From: Lepidodermella squamata
Taxonomy: Eukaryota; Animalia; Gastrotricha
Length of the DNA stretch: 64,000 bases
NCBI GenBank assembly: GCA_047495785.1
Contig: JBLDXI010000033.1
Coordinates: forward strand, 1,426,001-1,490,000
Direction of reading: 5' to 3'
Program-made: the position numbers and the translations under genes
In this document: piece by piece, positions 5,459 to 34,159 of the stretch
Layout: each line of letters begins with the position of its first letter
Numbering within the stretch: the stretch's first letter is position 1
Notes under the pieces: generated by a model
The model's database searches: none
What the model was told of the DNA's origin: nothing
The model's input: the letters and a program-made list of their open reading frames with translations, nothing else

Positions 5459-6337
5459 TTAAGAGCTATAAGCTGGGCATGACGCGTGAGGTTCCCATTG
5501 ATGTTGTAGCGTTAGGCCGCAGACGAAGCAGAACCTTAAATGGCAGGAGTGACAGGTAACTCGATTGCTGCCAAGGTAATTCCTGTAAACCTCAGTCCCA
5601 CATTTGGCACATTTAGCAGTTTTAGCAGCCGTTGATTCTTTTACGACGACATTCAAACTAGCTGAGGTATAACCCAACTGCTCAGTTTCCCGAGCAATCT
5701 CCGCCAACTGGACCTCCATAGCCTCGGCAGGCGTGAGAACGCACGAGACATCGTCGCTTGAGACTTCAACCCGGCAAACAGGGCATCGCAGCGGGAAATG
5801 CTTGCGATCAACATCGTTTGACATTGTAGTTCTCGCACATTTTTTACACAACTTATCGCGGCAGGTGGACATTTTCAACAAATCCTCGATGACGTTTCTT
5901 TGATGGCACAAGTCGCAGGTGAATAGCTCGCCAGGAGCTTCGGGTATAGATTTAACGTCACTCAACTCGTTGAGTCGTGATCGTAAATTTGAGACATCTT
6001 CCGTTAGCTGGTTGATTTGGTCTGTGAGTTTCACGTTCAACTCTCGCATGGAGGTTACCTCAGCTTGAAGAGATCGAACTTCTGCGTGTAACACCATGTC
6101 TCGGAGAGGTTTTAAGACGTCAACCGCCTCGCCGGTTATAAGCTGCCTTTCAGACTCAAATTTCCGGTAAACCTCCTCAGCTTCGGCATCGTTTTCAAAT
6201 TCGATCGAGAAAATTTGTGAAGCTGAACCTCGACCGGCCAATGCGATACTTTTCGCCACAATAGGGTGTATTGATTGCTCTATTTCCAACACGGTGGTTG
6301 CTTTTGTAGTGTGAACGACGACTTCAAGGAACGCCAT
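5459..6337 (-). CDS. Intronless coiled-coil + RING1-like + Rcat/IBR-like zinc-finger protein (truncated RBR E3-like)
   Basis: Coiled coil, then FTCDLC...CRDKLCKKC...LRCPVC (RING1-like), then TAKCAKC...GSNRVTCHSCHLRFCFVC...H..C (RBR RING2/IBR-like). Confidence 0.75.
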   Translation of the reverse strand: MAFLEVVVHTTKATTVLEIEQSIHPIVAKSIALAGRGSASQIFSIEFENDAEAEEVYRKFESERQLITGEAVDVLKPLRDMVLHAEVRSLQAEVTSMRELNVKLTDQINQLTEDVSNLRSRLNELSDVKSIPEAPGELFTCDLCHQRNVIEDLLKMSTCRDKLCKKCARTTMSNDVDRKHFPLRCPVCRVEVSSDDVSCVLTPAEAMEVQLAEIARETEQLGYTSASLNVVVKESTAAKTAKCAKCGTEVYRNYLGSNRVTCHSCHLRFCFVCGLTLQHQWEPHASCPAYSS

Positions 6338-8101
6338 TTGATGTAGGAACGATTGTATTTAAAAATCATGCAAGAATTAATGCGAAATTATTCAGGAGCA
6401 GCAGATAAGGCTCTTATCTTTATTGCAATGTTCAGTTATCAAAGAGACCGGTCAAGCGTGACCTTGGACTTTTTTTCGACCGCCTATCCTTATCACAGAA
6501 GTGCTATGTGGGTTACAATTTGGTGGTTAACGGACTATAATGAATGTGTTATTTCCAGCTATTGATTAAATATTTGTTATAAAATTGAATTTCGCCAATA
6601 TTGGCTCGAAAATGATACAAGATAATTCCTCATCTTAATAATGCGGGGCGAAGCTAATGATAAATAAATGACATATTTGACCCAATTTGTAGTTCAATGG
6701 CTCTGGAATATAATTGAAAAATGTCAAACTAACATATTCTCACAATCGATCTATTTTTTAAGGATCGTGAAAAGTGAATCTATTTACGTCCGTTTTTAAA
6801 CAATTTTAACCTTGTTTCGAAATGCGCGAAATTTAACAAAAATAAATCCATTCCACCGATGTGACGTAGATGTCTACGCATCGCGCGCGCTTCGTTTAGA
6901 TGAGATAGAAAATTCTTCGGATGAAATCTGATTTCAGTTTTCGACTCTCGTATTATTGGAAAGTCCGGGATATGCATATGACGTCTCGTGTTTATTCTGG
7001 TAGATAAAATCCCTCGGCTGAAGAGCATTCTTCAACTCAATTCGCAGTTCTTTATATTTCGAAGTGCGACAGCCGGATTAGCGCAAATAATACATTGATT
7101 CAAGGCTTTCGATAGCAGTGAAACGTCGCACTTTAATGACTCAATTGTCTAGGCTCCAGACTTAGGATATAAACGATTATAAGGGATAAAAATGACCATC
7201 TATTCGCCGCCTCGTTTACCCCTCAATTCCGATCCAGCAAGCTGCCGACATTGCCAATAATAATTCAACCATTTCGCTGAGAATTTACTTCTTATAAAAA
7301 CTGTTGATGTTCAGCAATCAGGAAACCGAAAAACAAACGAAATCACGCGCATCTGCTTTCATCAAATGTAAGCAAAGACAATTTTGAATTGTTTAGACGG
7401 GAGATTTAGACAACCGCCGTCGTTTGACTTCAGTCCCACAAATTTCATTATAACCAAAATGCAATTTTCTCGCCGTTATTGCATGCCAAGCTATAATGTA
7501 AATATTTTAGCCAGAAAAGTCATAATACATAGACAAATCAAGGCACATCCAGAATAATACGAACTGTAATTAGATCGCCTTATATGTTGCTATAACGTCA
7601 TGTTTTTCCGCGTACAAAACAACTATATATCTACCAATCGGTCATTGATTGATTGAACAAATTTGCTGGCATCCCGCGATCAAAAAAAACAGAATAACAA
7701 TAACACAAAAAATAATTGCTACTGGCCCTGCCCGTGGTGGTCGCATTTTTACAGACTACCATATAGCCGAGACTTTTGTTAACATCGATTTTTCGCTACC
7801 ATAAATTGTATAGTGATGCGTAACTCAATTTAACATGCGGCCATTTCGTAGAGTGGGCGTCGTCGTTGTAGTAAAGACTTTGCTCTAGTTCGGAATTTTC
7901 AAGAAAAACGTCGCCACCGATGTACTTATATTTTGGTCGACCTTATACCAATTAATCCATAATATACCCTCTCATATTAGCATTTTTGATTTTCTCCTGA
8001 TATATGGAAATAATATGTGCCTACATATATTTTTAGTTTGCATCAAACGACTTCAGCCCCTTTGCGCGTTTATTTACGAATATTTGCAAAATTTGAAAAT
8101 A

Positions 8102-32437: not shown

Positions 32438-32676
32438 GAACTTTCGAAGCAACTTTCGACATTTAAAAAATATTCGGACAAATTTATGAAATTCACAAGT
32501 TTTATTTTCAAAATTTAAAAAGTTTTCCACAACTTTAAAAATACGTGTCTGTTACAATTTTTAGGATTTTTGTCTAACGGGTTTCACAGAAATAAACTAG
32601 ATTCACTGCCCGATTTTTCCTTTATTTTTGCAGACATACTACTCCCTCATTATTTTATCAGTTCAGGTCGTAAAAC

Positions 32677-33839
32677 TGTAAGGATCTGCCGGCTGGCATC
32701 TGCGCAATAACTAAGAACAATATTGTGATTCTCATGTGATATCTAATTAGGAAGTGATCGCGTGTTCGACTTAGATTTGTATCGCTAATATTTAAGGCCT
32801 TGAATTCCAACGATCAATGTTCGATTCATTCACAATAAAGTATAGAGTAGTGCCTGGCCAAGTCTTGATGTTTCCCTGACAGAATGAATCGAACCAAAGT
32901 CCTTGCCGGACGGCCACCCACTACTCTACTTCGGAATCTTGCTGCTAAGTCTCGTTCAGTTCGAATTCGTCTACAATGCCAACGCTATGCTGATATGGTA
33001 TCGCCCTGGCCCGCGTGTGGTGTTCCGACGTCGACTTACAACGATGATTTCTGGCGCTTCGCTGGTCAATGGCTTTGGCGTTCAGCGCATCACCACTGAA
33101 GTTCGTCTCCAAGATCCAGCCCTTACGCTCAAGGTGTCGCCCTGGCTTGCGCGCTCGATTTGCCGACGGCTCACTGGTTATGGCTACGCATCTTCTTGTT
33201 CACGGTCAAGCGTTGATTGGGGCAGCCTCGCTGATGTTTGTCTTCAACGCCCGCAACTCGCTGGATGGCTTGTCTCGGGTGCCGCGATCTCGATCCTGCG
33301 ACTGCTTGGCCCCTGTCTTCGCTCCATGGCGTTGTCGTGTTACCTGGCTGGTGTCATGGCAACGATTCCGTGATTTGAAACACTGTCTTGTCTTGTCTCT
33401 GCATGTTCATGATCTCCTGCCTCGTTGGCTTCGCTATTCTCGAGTTTCATCTTCCGTTTCGCTTATTATCTTCATTTATTGACTGGAGCTCGCAATTCAG
33501 GCCGATTCACGGTTCCAAGGCGTTGTCGTTCCGTTGGATAGCGGTCGCATCGCAATTTTTTCGGACTGGAGAGCGCGTTTCTCGATTTTTCGTGGCTAGC
33601 AAGCGGCTGTGGGAGGTGTTCGAGGAGGGCAAAGTGTAAGGATCTGCCGGCTGGCATCTGCGCAATAACTAAGAACAATATTGTGATTCTCATGTGATAT
33701 CTAATTAGGAAGTGATCGCGTGTTCGACTTAGATTTGTATCGCTAATATTTAAGGCCTTGAATTCCAACGATCAATGTTCGATTCATTCACAATAAAGTA
33801 TAGAGTAGTGCCTGGCCAAGTCTTGATGTTTCCCTGACA
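32677..33839 (+). mobile_element. Miniature non-autonomous LTR retroelement (TRIM-like), 1163 bp; LTRs 32677..32881 and 33635..33839
   Basis: Two identical 205-bp LTRs with TG...CA ends, 5-bp TSD AAAAC (32672-32676, 33840-33844), polypurine tract GAGGAGGGCAAAG before the 3' LTR, TATTTAAG and AATAAA inside the LTR; no gag/pol recognisable. Confidence 0.95.
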
Positions 33840-34159
33840 AAAACTGAACGTATCGAAATTTGGTGTTGAAAAAAGAGTTTGCTGATGAAACAAGTAATTT
33901 GCTGATGAAAAAAGAAAATTTGATGTTGAAAGAAGAGTGACCCGCCTTTTTGTAACAAACTGCCCGTACCTGTTGCGGCTTCACAGCGATTTTCATCAGC
34001 GCGCCGCAACCCCGCCGATTGCCGCATCTACCTGTGCTGTTGTTTAGCTGCTGGTCGTGCCGGCGAATCATGTCGACCTTTGATTTAGGCTACTTACGGC
34101 AATTTCTTCAATTTTTTCAGATTTTGAGAATTTCATGAATAAAATACATGTGATGTTGC

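Follow-up and report, generated by a model that had tools for sequence, protein, structure and literature searches.

A gene-less, TRIM-like LTR retroelement of the gastrotrich Lepidodermella squamata with a predicted Tf1-like self-priming site

Introduction

Self-priming of reverse transcription has, to our knowledge, been proven for Tf1 of fission yeast only; in the other cases, all of them autonomous elements found in fungi, vertebrates or some plants, it has been inferred. Tf1 and Tf2 of Schizosaccharomyces pombe and Tj1 of S. japonicus are self-priming Ty3/gypsy chromoviruses. In Tf1, for which the proof exists, the pairing extends over 11 nt and RNase H cleaves between bases 11 and 12 (PMC7175516). 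From the same arrangement, self-priming has been deduced for Tj1 and for elements ranging from fungi to vertebrates (PMC4600332), and the plant lineages Tcn1 (gypsy) and TAR (copia) have been read in this way from the arrangement of their sequences (PMC6317226). TRIMs, by contrast, are elements of less than about 1 kb with repeats of 100-250 bp and, by definition, a tRNA-complementary primer site; for the TRIMs of bivalves no priming mechanism could be proposed (PMC6934838).

Here we analyse an LTR element, 1163 bp in total, that occupies positions 32677-33839 of a 64,000-nt stretch of the L. squamata genome (the window). As in Tf1, Tf2 and Tj1, its primer site adjoins the 5' LTR and complements a segment of its own LTR at the predicted transcript start, no tRNA site is present, and additional RNA structure surrounds the primer site. 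Whereas 11 nt pair in Tf1, 13 nt do so in the window element and 14 in a sister family described below. Unlike the three yeast elements, the window element is gene-less, helper-dependent and resident in an invertebrate, its transcription start and primer cleavage are predicted, and its second stem would cross the primer helix in a pseudoknot-like manner. The likeness to Tf1 and to sushi elements is one of LTR and primer-site arrangement, the window element having no reverse transcriptase by which it could be placed in a clade. With the vertebrate sushi group and with plant Tcn1 and TAR it has in common a self-priming that is predicted from this same arrangement, but those elements are autonomous and carry gag-pol, which it does not. 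Plant and bivalve TRIMs resemble it in being small and non-coding, with direct repeats of 100-250 bp, a polypurine tract, a 5-bp duplication, many solo copies and dependence on a helper. Its length is slightly over their limit of about 1 kb, whereas its 205-bp repeats lie within their range. In contrast to the defining tRNA site of TRIMs, its primer site pairs with its own LTR, and, in contrast to the bivalve TRIMs, a priming mechanism can be proposed for it. On our reading, it is a Tf1-like self-priming, TRIM-like element that would work as Tf1 does. A limited literature search returned neither a non-autonomous self-priming family nor an invertebrate case, which is no proof of absence.

Results

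The features of the element are collected in Table 1. The identical 205-bp LTRs, the AAAAC duplication, the polypurine tract and the 753-bp interior without gag or pol that the original prediction had described were all borne out on re-reading, and the missing TGG site, the 13-nt reverse complement and the TATA-like box 30 nt upstream of 32819 were confirmed in the sequence. Directly after the 5' LTR there is neither TGG, as read from the sequence, nor any tRNA complement. The interior (32882-33634) matches nothing in Pfam and nothing in Rfam; its open frames are not kept among the copies, which differ by many insertions and deletions, and no reverse-transcriptase motif is present in any locus examined. 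The window element is supported as a genuine non-autonomous LTR retroelement. Neighbouring genes for a Cys-loop receptor, a P450 and an M13 peptidase (Pfam) agree with the animal host that had been proposed. Just 13 nt past the insertion site, at 33857-33936, the window holds four tandem copies of a 20-nt unit (AATTTGNTGNTGAAAAAAGA-like).

Table 1. Features of the window element; the U3, R and U5 borders of the 5' LTR are predicted from the TATA box, the AATAAA and the GT-rich tail.
Feature	Positions in window	Strand	Remarks
Left target-site duplication, AAAAC	32672-32676	+	Read from sequence; single AAAAC in empty-site contig
5' LTR, 205 bp, TG..CA	32677-32881	+	100% identical to 3' LTR
Predicted U3, about 142 nt	about 32677-32818	+	
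Predicted R, about 42 nt	about 32819-32860	+	
Predicted U5, about 21 nt	about 32861-32881	+	
TATA-like box, TATTTAAG	32789-32796	+	Begins 30 nt before the putative self-primer segment at 32819
Putative self-primer segment, GTTCGATTCATTC	32819-32831	+	Predicted first 13 nt of transcript; kept in LTRs of all subfamilies
Poly(A) signal in LTR, AATAAA, then GT-rich stretch	32834-32839	+	Kept in family copies and sister family
R/U5-leader stem, 5' arm	32843-32859	+	Inverted repeat; in minimum-energy fold
Predicted primer-binding site, GAATGAATCGAAC	32882-32894	+	Adjoins the CA of the LTR; complement of 32819-32831
R/U5-leader stem, 3' arm	32912-32928	+	In most conserved part of leader
Non-coding interior, 753 bp	32882-33634	+	No Pfam or Rfam match; frames not kept among copies
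Polypurine tract, GAGGAGGGCAAAG	33622-33634	+	Adjoins 3' LTR
3' LTR, 205 bp	33635-33839	+	Identical to 5' LTR
Right target-site duplication, AAAAC	33840-33844	+	

The first 13 nt after the 5' LTR pair with the LTR segment at 13 of 13 positions. When the LTR was subjected to composition-preserving shuffles (n=100,000), a 13-nt complement anchored at the first post-LTR base was obtained twice, the usual length being 3-5 nt. Because the complement starts at the first post-LTR base, it lies where the 3' end of a primer is required to be if it is to define the U5 border. A second inverted repeat, formed by 32843-32859 with 32912-32928 (17 nt, 15 pairs), encloses the primer site; the original prediction had recognized the inverted repeat at the primer site and overlooked this second one around it. 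The resulting R/U5-leader stem belongs to the best fold of both the window family and the sister family, which builds an equivalent stem from different sequence. A conserved 19-mer of the leader that overlaps the 3' arm of the stem was found, in a search of the genome, in family copies only. In a nested fold the primer helix and the R/U5-leader stem exclude each other, and the folding program gives them as alternatives; modelled together, the two helices would form a pseudoknot with the primer site in its loop.

Judged from these arrangements, the window element probably primes its own reverse transcription as Tf1 does, with a predicted transcription start and a postulated helper. Transcription would start in the 5' LTR about 30 nt past the TATA box, no more than a few bases from 32819, and would end after the AATAAA of the 3' LTR. 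In the RNA, the first 13 nt would fold back onto the 13 nt directly after U5, while the R/U5-leader stem would hold the primer site in a loop, the two helices giving a pseudoknot-like fold. The RNase H of the helper would then cleave the RNA behind the paired segment, and the 3' end so released would serve as primer for minus-strand synthesis through U5 and R. From there a normal LTR cycle would follow: strand transfer via R, initiation of the plus strand from the polypurine tract and, finally, integration into a target of which 5 bp are duplicated. An autonomous element would have to supply Gag, protease, reverse transcriptase/RNase H and integrase in trans. A transcription start well upstream would make the paired segment internal, and cleavage could still free the primer.

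Searching the genome (121 Mb, 151 contigs) with the LTR, as the original prediction had advised, did turn up further copies: more than 40 LTR matches, about 20 solo LTRs, whose 5-bp duplications are all perfect and differ in sequence, and about 15-20 interior copies at 76-91% identity. Pairing is kept at some 15 junctions of 5' LTR and primer site, in several subfamilies; 11 junctions elsewhere are exact over 16 nt, and the remaining ones differ at single bases, including one C-to-T variant by which a G:C pair becomes G:U. The junction of polypurine tract and LTR recurs in three other full copies. Two LTR subfamilies are about 70% identical in U3 and identical at 63 of 63 positions in R-U5 as measured from the start of the 13-mer, the identity between them beginning 4 nt upstream of the 13-mer, at CAAT. 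Such a border is as expected if U3/R, and with it the start site, lies about there, and the 63/63 identity is as expected under strong constraint on a module of R-U5 and primer site. Identical R-U5 next to unlike U3 points either to exchange between RNAs packaged together or to strong constraint.

Several LTRs of the family are composite or damaged. The window LTR is a mosaic, its first ~15 nt (32677-32691) being those of the second subfamily and the remainder those of the first. The copy on C24 (L033; C24:2881096-2882280, minus strand) differs in U3 type between its 5' and its 3' LTR. Deletions in L033, L034 and L037 remove the part from TATA to R or most of the LTR, and several copies have 3' LTRs with deletions in or around R. 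Faulty strand transfers possibly account for the deleted and mixed LTRs of L033, L034 and L037.

A sister mini-LTR family is represented by L070, which lies on the minus strand 1.36 Mb upstream on the same contig, and by L071; its LTR measures 238 bp and its copies are 1.7 and 4.05 kb long, L071 being the longer. The sister LTR is homologous to that of the window, with the termini (TGTAA..TGACA), a U3 motif, the TATA spacing, the AATAAA and the U5 end common to both. Both families also have the polypurine core GAGGAGGG, the sister tract being GAGGAGGGTGTAG, and the sister TATA-like box, TACTTAAG, lies 31 nt before its own primer segment, compared with 30 nt in the window family. As for compensatory changes between primer site and LTR segment, which the original prediction had put forward as a check, the window's own family has none and displays conservation and decay only, whereas in the sister family four positions have changed on both sides and 13 of 13 pairs are kept (14 in fact, the sister complement starting one base earlier). 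Over the whole structure, seven pairs are changed on both sides where 2.2 are expected, a number reached in 0 of 500 shuffles, and these counts, coming from one sister family, stand for a few independent events. Sliding the partner by one to three columns destroyed the pairing. Since self-priming recopies the primer into the primer site in each cycle, the covariation fits the mechanism and does not constitute an independent selective test.

Two independent insertions of the window family are aberrant, in that an inverted R-U5 replaces the 5' LTR and is joined to the leader at the 13-mer; both have U5 ends on both sides and a 5-bp duplication. The first, flanked by GCTCT, is present on C42 and C32 (L035, from C42:2051927; L036, from C32:2128214) by way of a later duplication, and the second, flanked by GGAAC (L037; C34:943531-944330, minus strand), has two extra bases at the junction. 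In forming such copies, the 3' end of the finished minus strand, that is, the primer segment, would anneal to its complement inside the minus-strand LTR and would then be extended through R and U5, yielding the inverted R-U5. Such a slip requires a primer site that is complementary to R, and it indicates that the 13-mer was involved in annealing while cDNA was being made. The U5-to-U5 integrants probably arose as a side product of this complementarity, and taken alone they do not prove that the 13-mer is the primer.

The same integrants bear on a reading that we regard as unlikely, namely that the pairing is a structural signal, for packaging, dimerization or control of translation or polyadenylation, and that some other primer is used. 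A signal of this kind would be in line with the second R/U5-leader stem, with the conserved U5-leader structures known around the primer sites of retroviruses and LTR retroelements, and with a start site and primer that are predicted rather than mapped, but the complement begins exactly where the U5 border of the cDNA is set (in the sister family, one base before), no further primer-like site, be it TGG or the complement of a tRNA, follows the LTR, and the aberrant copies place the 13-mer in strand annealing during cDNA synthesis.

In the whole genome the 13-mer has 54 exact sites, which are family LTRs and primer sites except for 8 unrelated ones; the 10 sites that earlier LTR and primer-site matches had left unexplained are 2 more LTR copies and these 8. 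ARAGORN identified no tRNA gene at any of the 54 exact copies, as the original prediction of a 13-mer without a host tRNA match implies. The 16-mer near-matches examined are random non-LTR sites and contain no tRNAs, and the 64-kb window has no tRNA gene. A tRNA as the primer is rejected on the basis of the tRNA-free exact copies (54 sites) together with the tRNA-free near-matches examined, and the sequence does not have the character of an internal-tRNA-fragment primer site as found in copia-like elements. It is also very improbable that a different host RNA, either a T-arm tRNA fragment or a small RNA ending in GTTCGATTCATTC, acts as primer and that the match to the LTR is secondary. On our own reading the segment opens with nine bases, GTTCGATTC, that are reminiscent of the T loop of a tRNA, and half-tRNA primers are known in Ty1/copia lineages (PMC6317226); however, tRNA genes are lacking at the non-family exact copies of the 13-mer and at the near-matches examined, the 13-mer of the sister family differs, matches its own LTR and is not T-loop-like, and a host primer would leave unexplained that each LTR contains the sequence of its own primer, equally far from the TATA box in both families. 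Chance complementarity in an inert, functionless repeat, which has nothing but the AT-rich make-up of the 13-mer in its favour, can be set aside in view of the shuffles (13 nt in 2 of 100,000), the pairing kept at about 15 junctions and through the four double changes of the sister family, and the many integrations of the family.

For self-priming, the reading that we prefer, the original prediction had also called for an autonomous self-priming partner elsewhere in the genome; none was found near any of the 149 integrase matches. The queries were the LTR, the U5-PBS-leader, a PBS 16-mer, the U5 end, the leader 19-mer, the junction of polypurine tract and LTR, the interior and the sister LTR, and across the genome no cis-sequence of the family lies within 10 kb of those 149 matches. 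Within 9 kb downstream of the primer-site copies there is no coding sequence of helper type. The short U5-end pattern TTTCCNTGACA, with at least 346 matches, was of no use for the helper search. Integrase and chromodomain occur together in single frames of 1365-1541 aa at C3:2954926, C11:74071, C32:3130797, C20:2902334 and C7:432676, and these long frames are candidates for genuine chromoviruses. Frames of 474-541 aa that also combine integrase and chromodomain were rejected as helper, the example fetched (L072) being Polinton/Maverick-like with an A32-type ATPase.

These shorter integrase frames form several near-identical groups with tens of genomic copies. L072 (G000:C33:23300-31000; frames 1345-2811 on the minus strand and 5986-6687 on the plus strand) is a Polinton/Maverick-like DNA element whose integrase, 488 aa long, includes both a chromodomain and a domain like phospholipase A2; an A32-type packaging ATPase is encoded close by, and internal tandem duplications repeat the 5' part of the integrase gene. 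Other loci were considered as full-length elements and rejected. The pair C15:3279469/3285985 represents one solo LTR that was duplicated along with its flanks: at L031 (C15:3278500-3287500) two diverged LTRs stand 6.5 kb apart with identical left and right flanks, which marks a duplicated segment. The 7.8-kb repeat of C36 (L047, C36:394000-403999; also C36:411442) has an ankyrin frame and no pol. Its unit, present three times in tandem, runs from an LTR, primer site and leader into non-retroviral sequence that includes a 345-aa ankyrin-repeat frame, and the triplet is either an LTR-bounded array produced by unequal crossing-over or a segmental triplication. The copies on C29 (L050, from C29:3891500) and C46 (L051, from C46:517000) consist of a 5' LTR and leader, with about 450 nt of family interior, and then of unrelated frames, one of which encodes a 441-aa PQQ/BamB-like beta-propeller; the same arrangement on two contigs suggests a duplicated segment.

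Two public runs were found, both in the form of contigs and one of them tentatively taken for RNA. In run X2 one contig, at a depth of 37, joins 32671 to 33840 and represents the exact empty site with one AAAAC. The left-flank contig, at a depth of 69, ends two bases into the LTR, at the point where filled and empty forms diverge, and the depth of the empty-site contig is about half that of the flank. Filled and empty forms both appear to be present in the run X2 sample, for which the data, being contigs, show presence and not frequency. Over 32642-33845 run X2 has two more element-free contig forms (35 replaced letters; CAAT), which resemble diverged versions of the locus, either allelic or duplicated. 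The identical LTRs and the exact empty site support a recent insertion, as the original prediction of a young, recently mobilized copy had held. As the copy appears to be polymorphic, the family and its helper are probably still active.

Discussion

A wider reading, which we offer tentatively and consider doubtful as a whole, would combine several of these observations. The host would harbour a guild of LTR retroelements without tRNA primers, made up of at least two diverged non-coding families and possibly their helper. This helper would have no detectable LTR, primer-site, leader or polypurine sequence in common with the mini-elements, and recognition and the RNase H cut in trans would rest on the conserved fold, in which the R/U5-leader stem crosses the helix of 5' end and primer site. 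Integrants with an inverted U5 would be a by-product of this architecture alone, a genomic fossil by which self-priming might be diagnosed from sequence alone.

Compared with the known cases, what is new is the invertebrate host, the absence of genes from the element, and an unusually good comparative support for a sequence-based prediction, which consists of the compensatory changes between two families, the second conserved stem and the aberrant integrants. Pairing with the element's own LTR explains why annotation of primer sites by tRNA complementarity fails for such elements. With about 120 nt of 5' RNA, the element would provide a minimal natural substrate for studying how the primer is cut and used. 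The cis-requirements of the predicted self-priming would be open to parasitism in trans.
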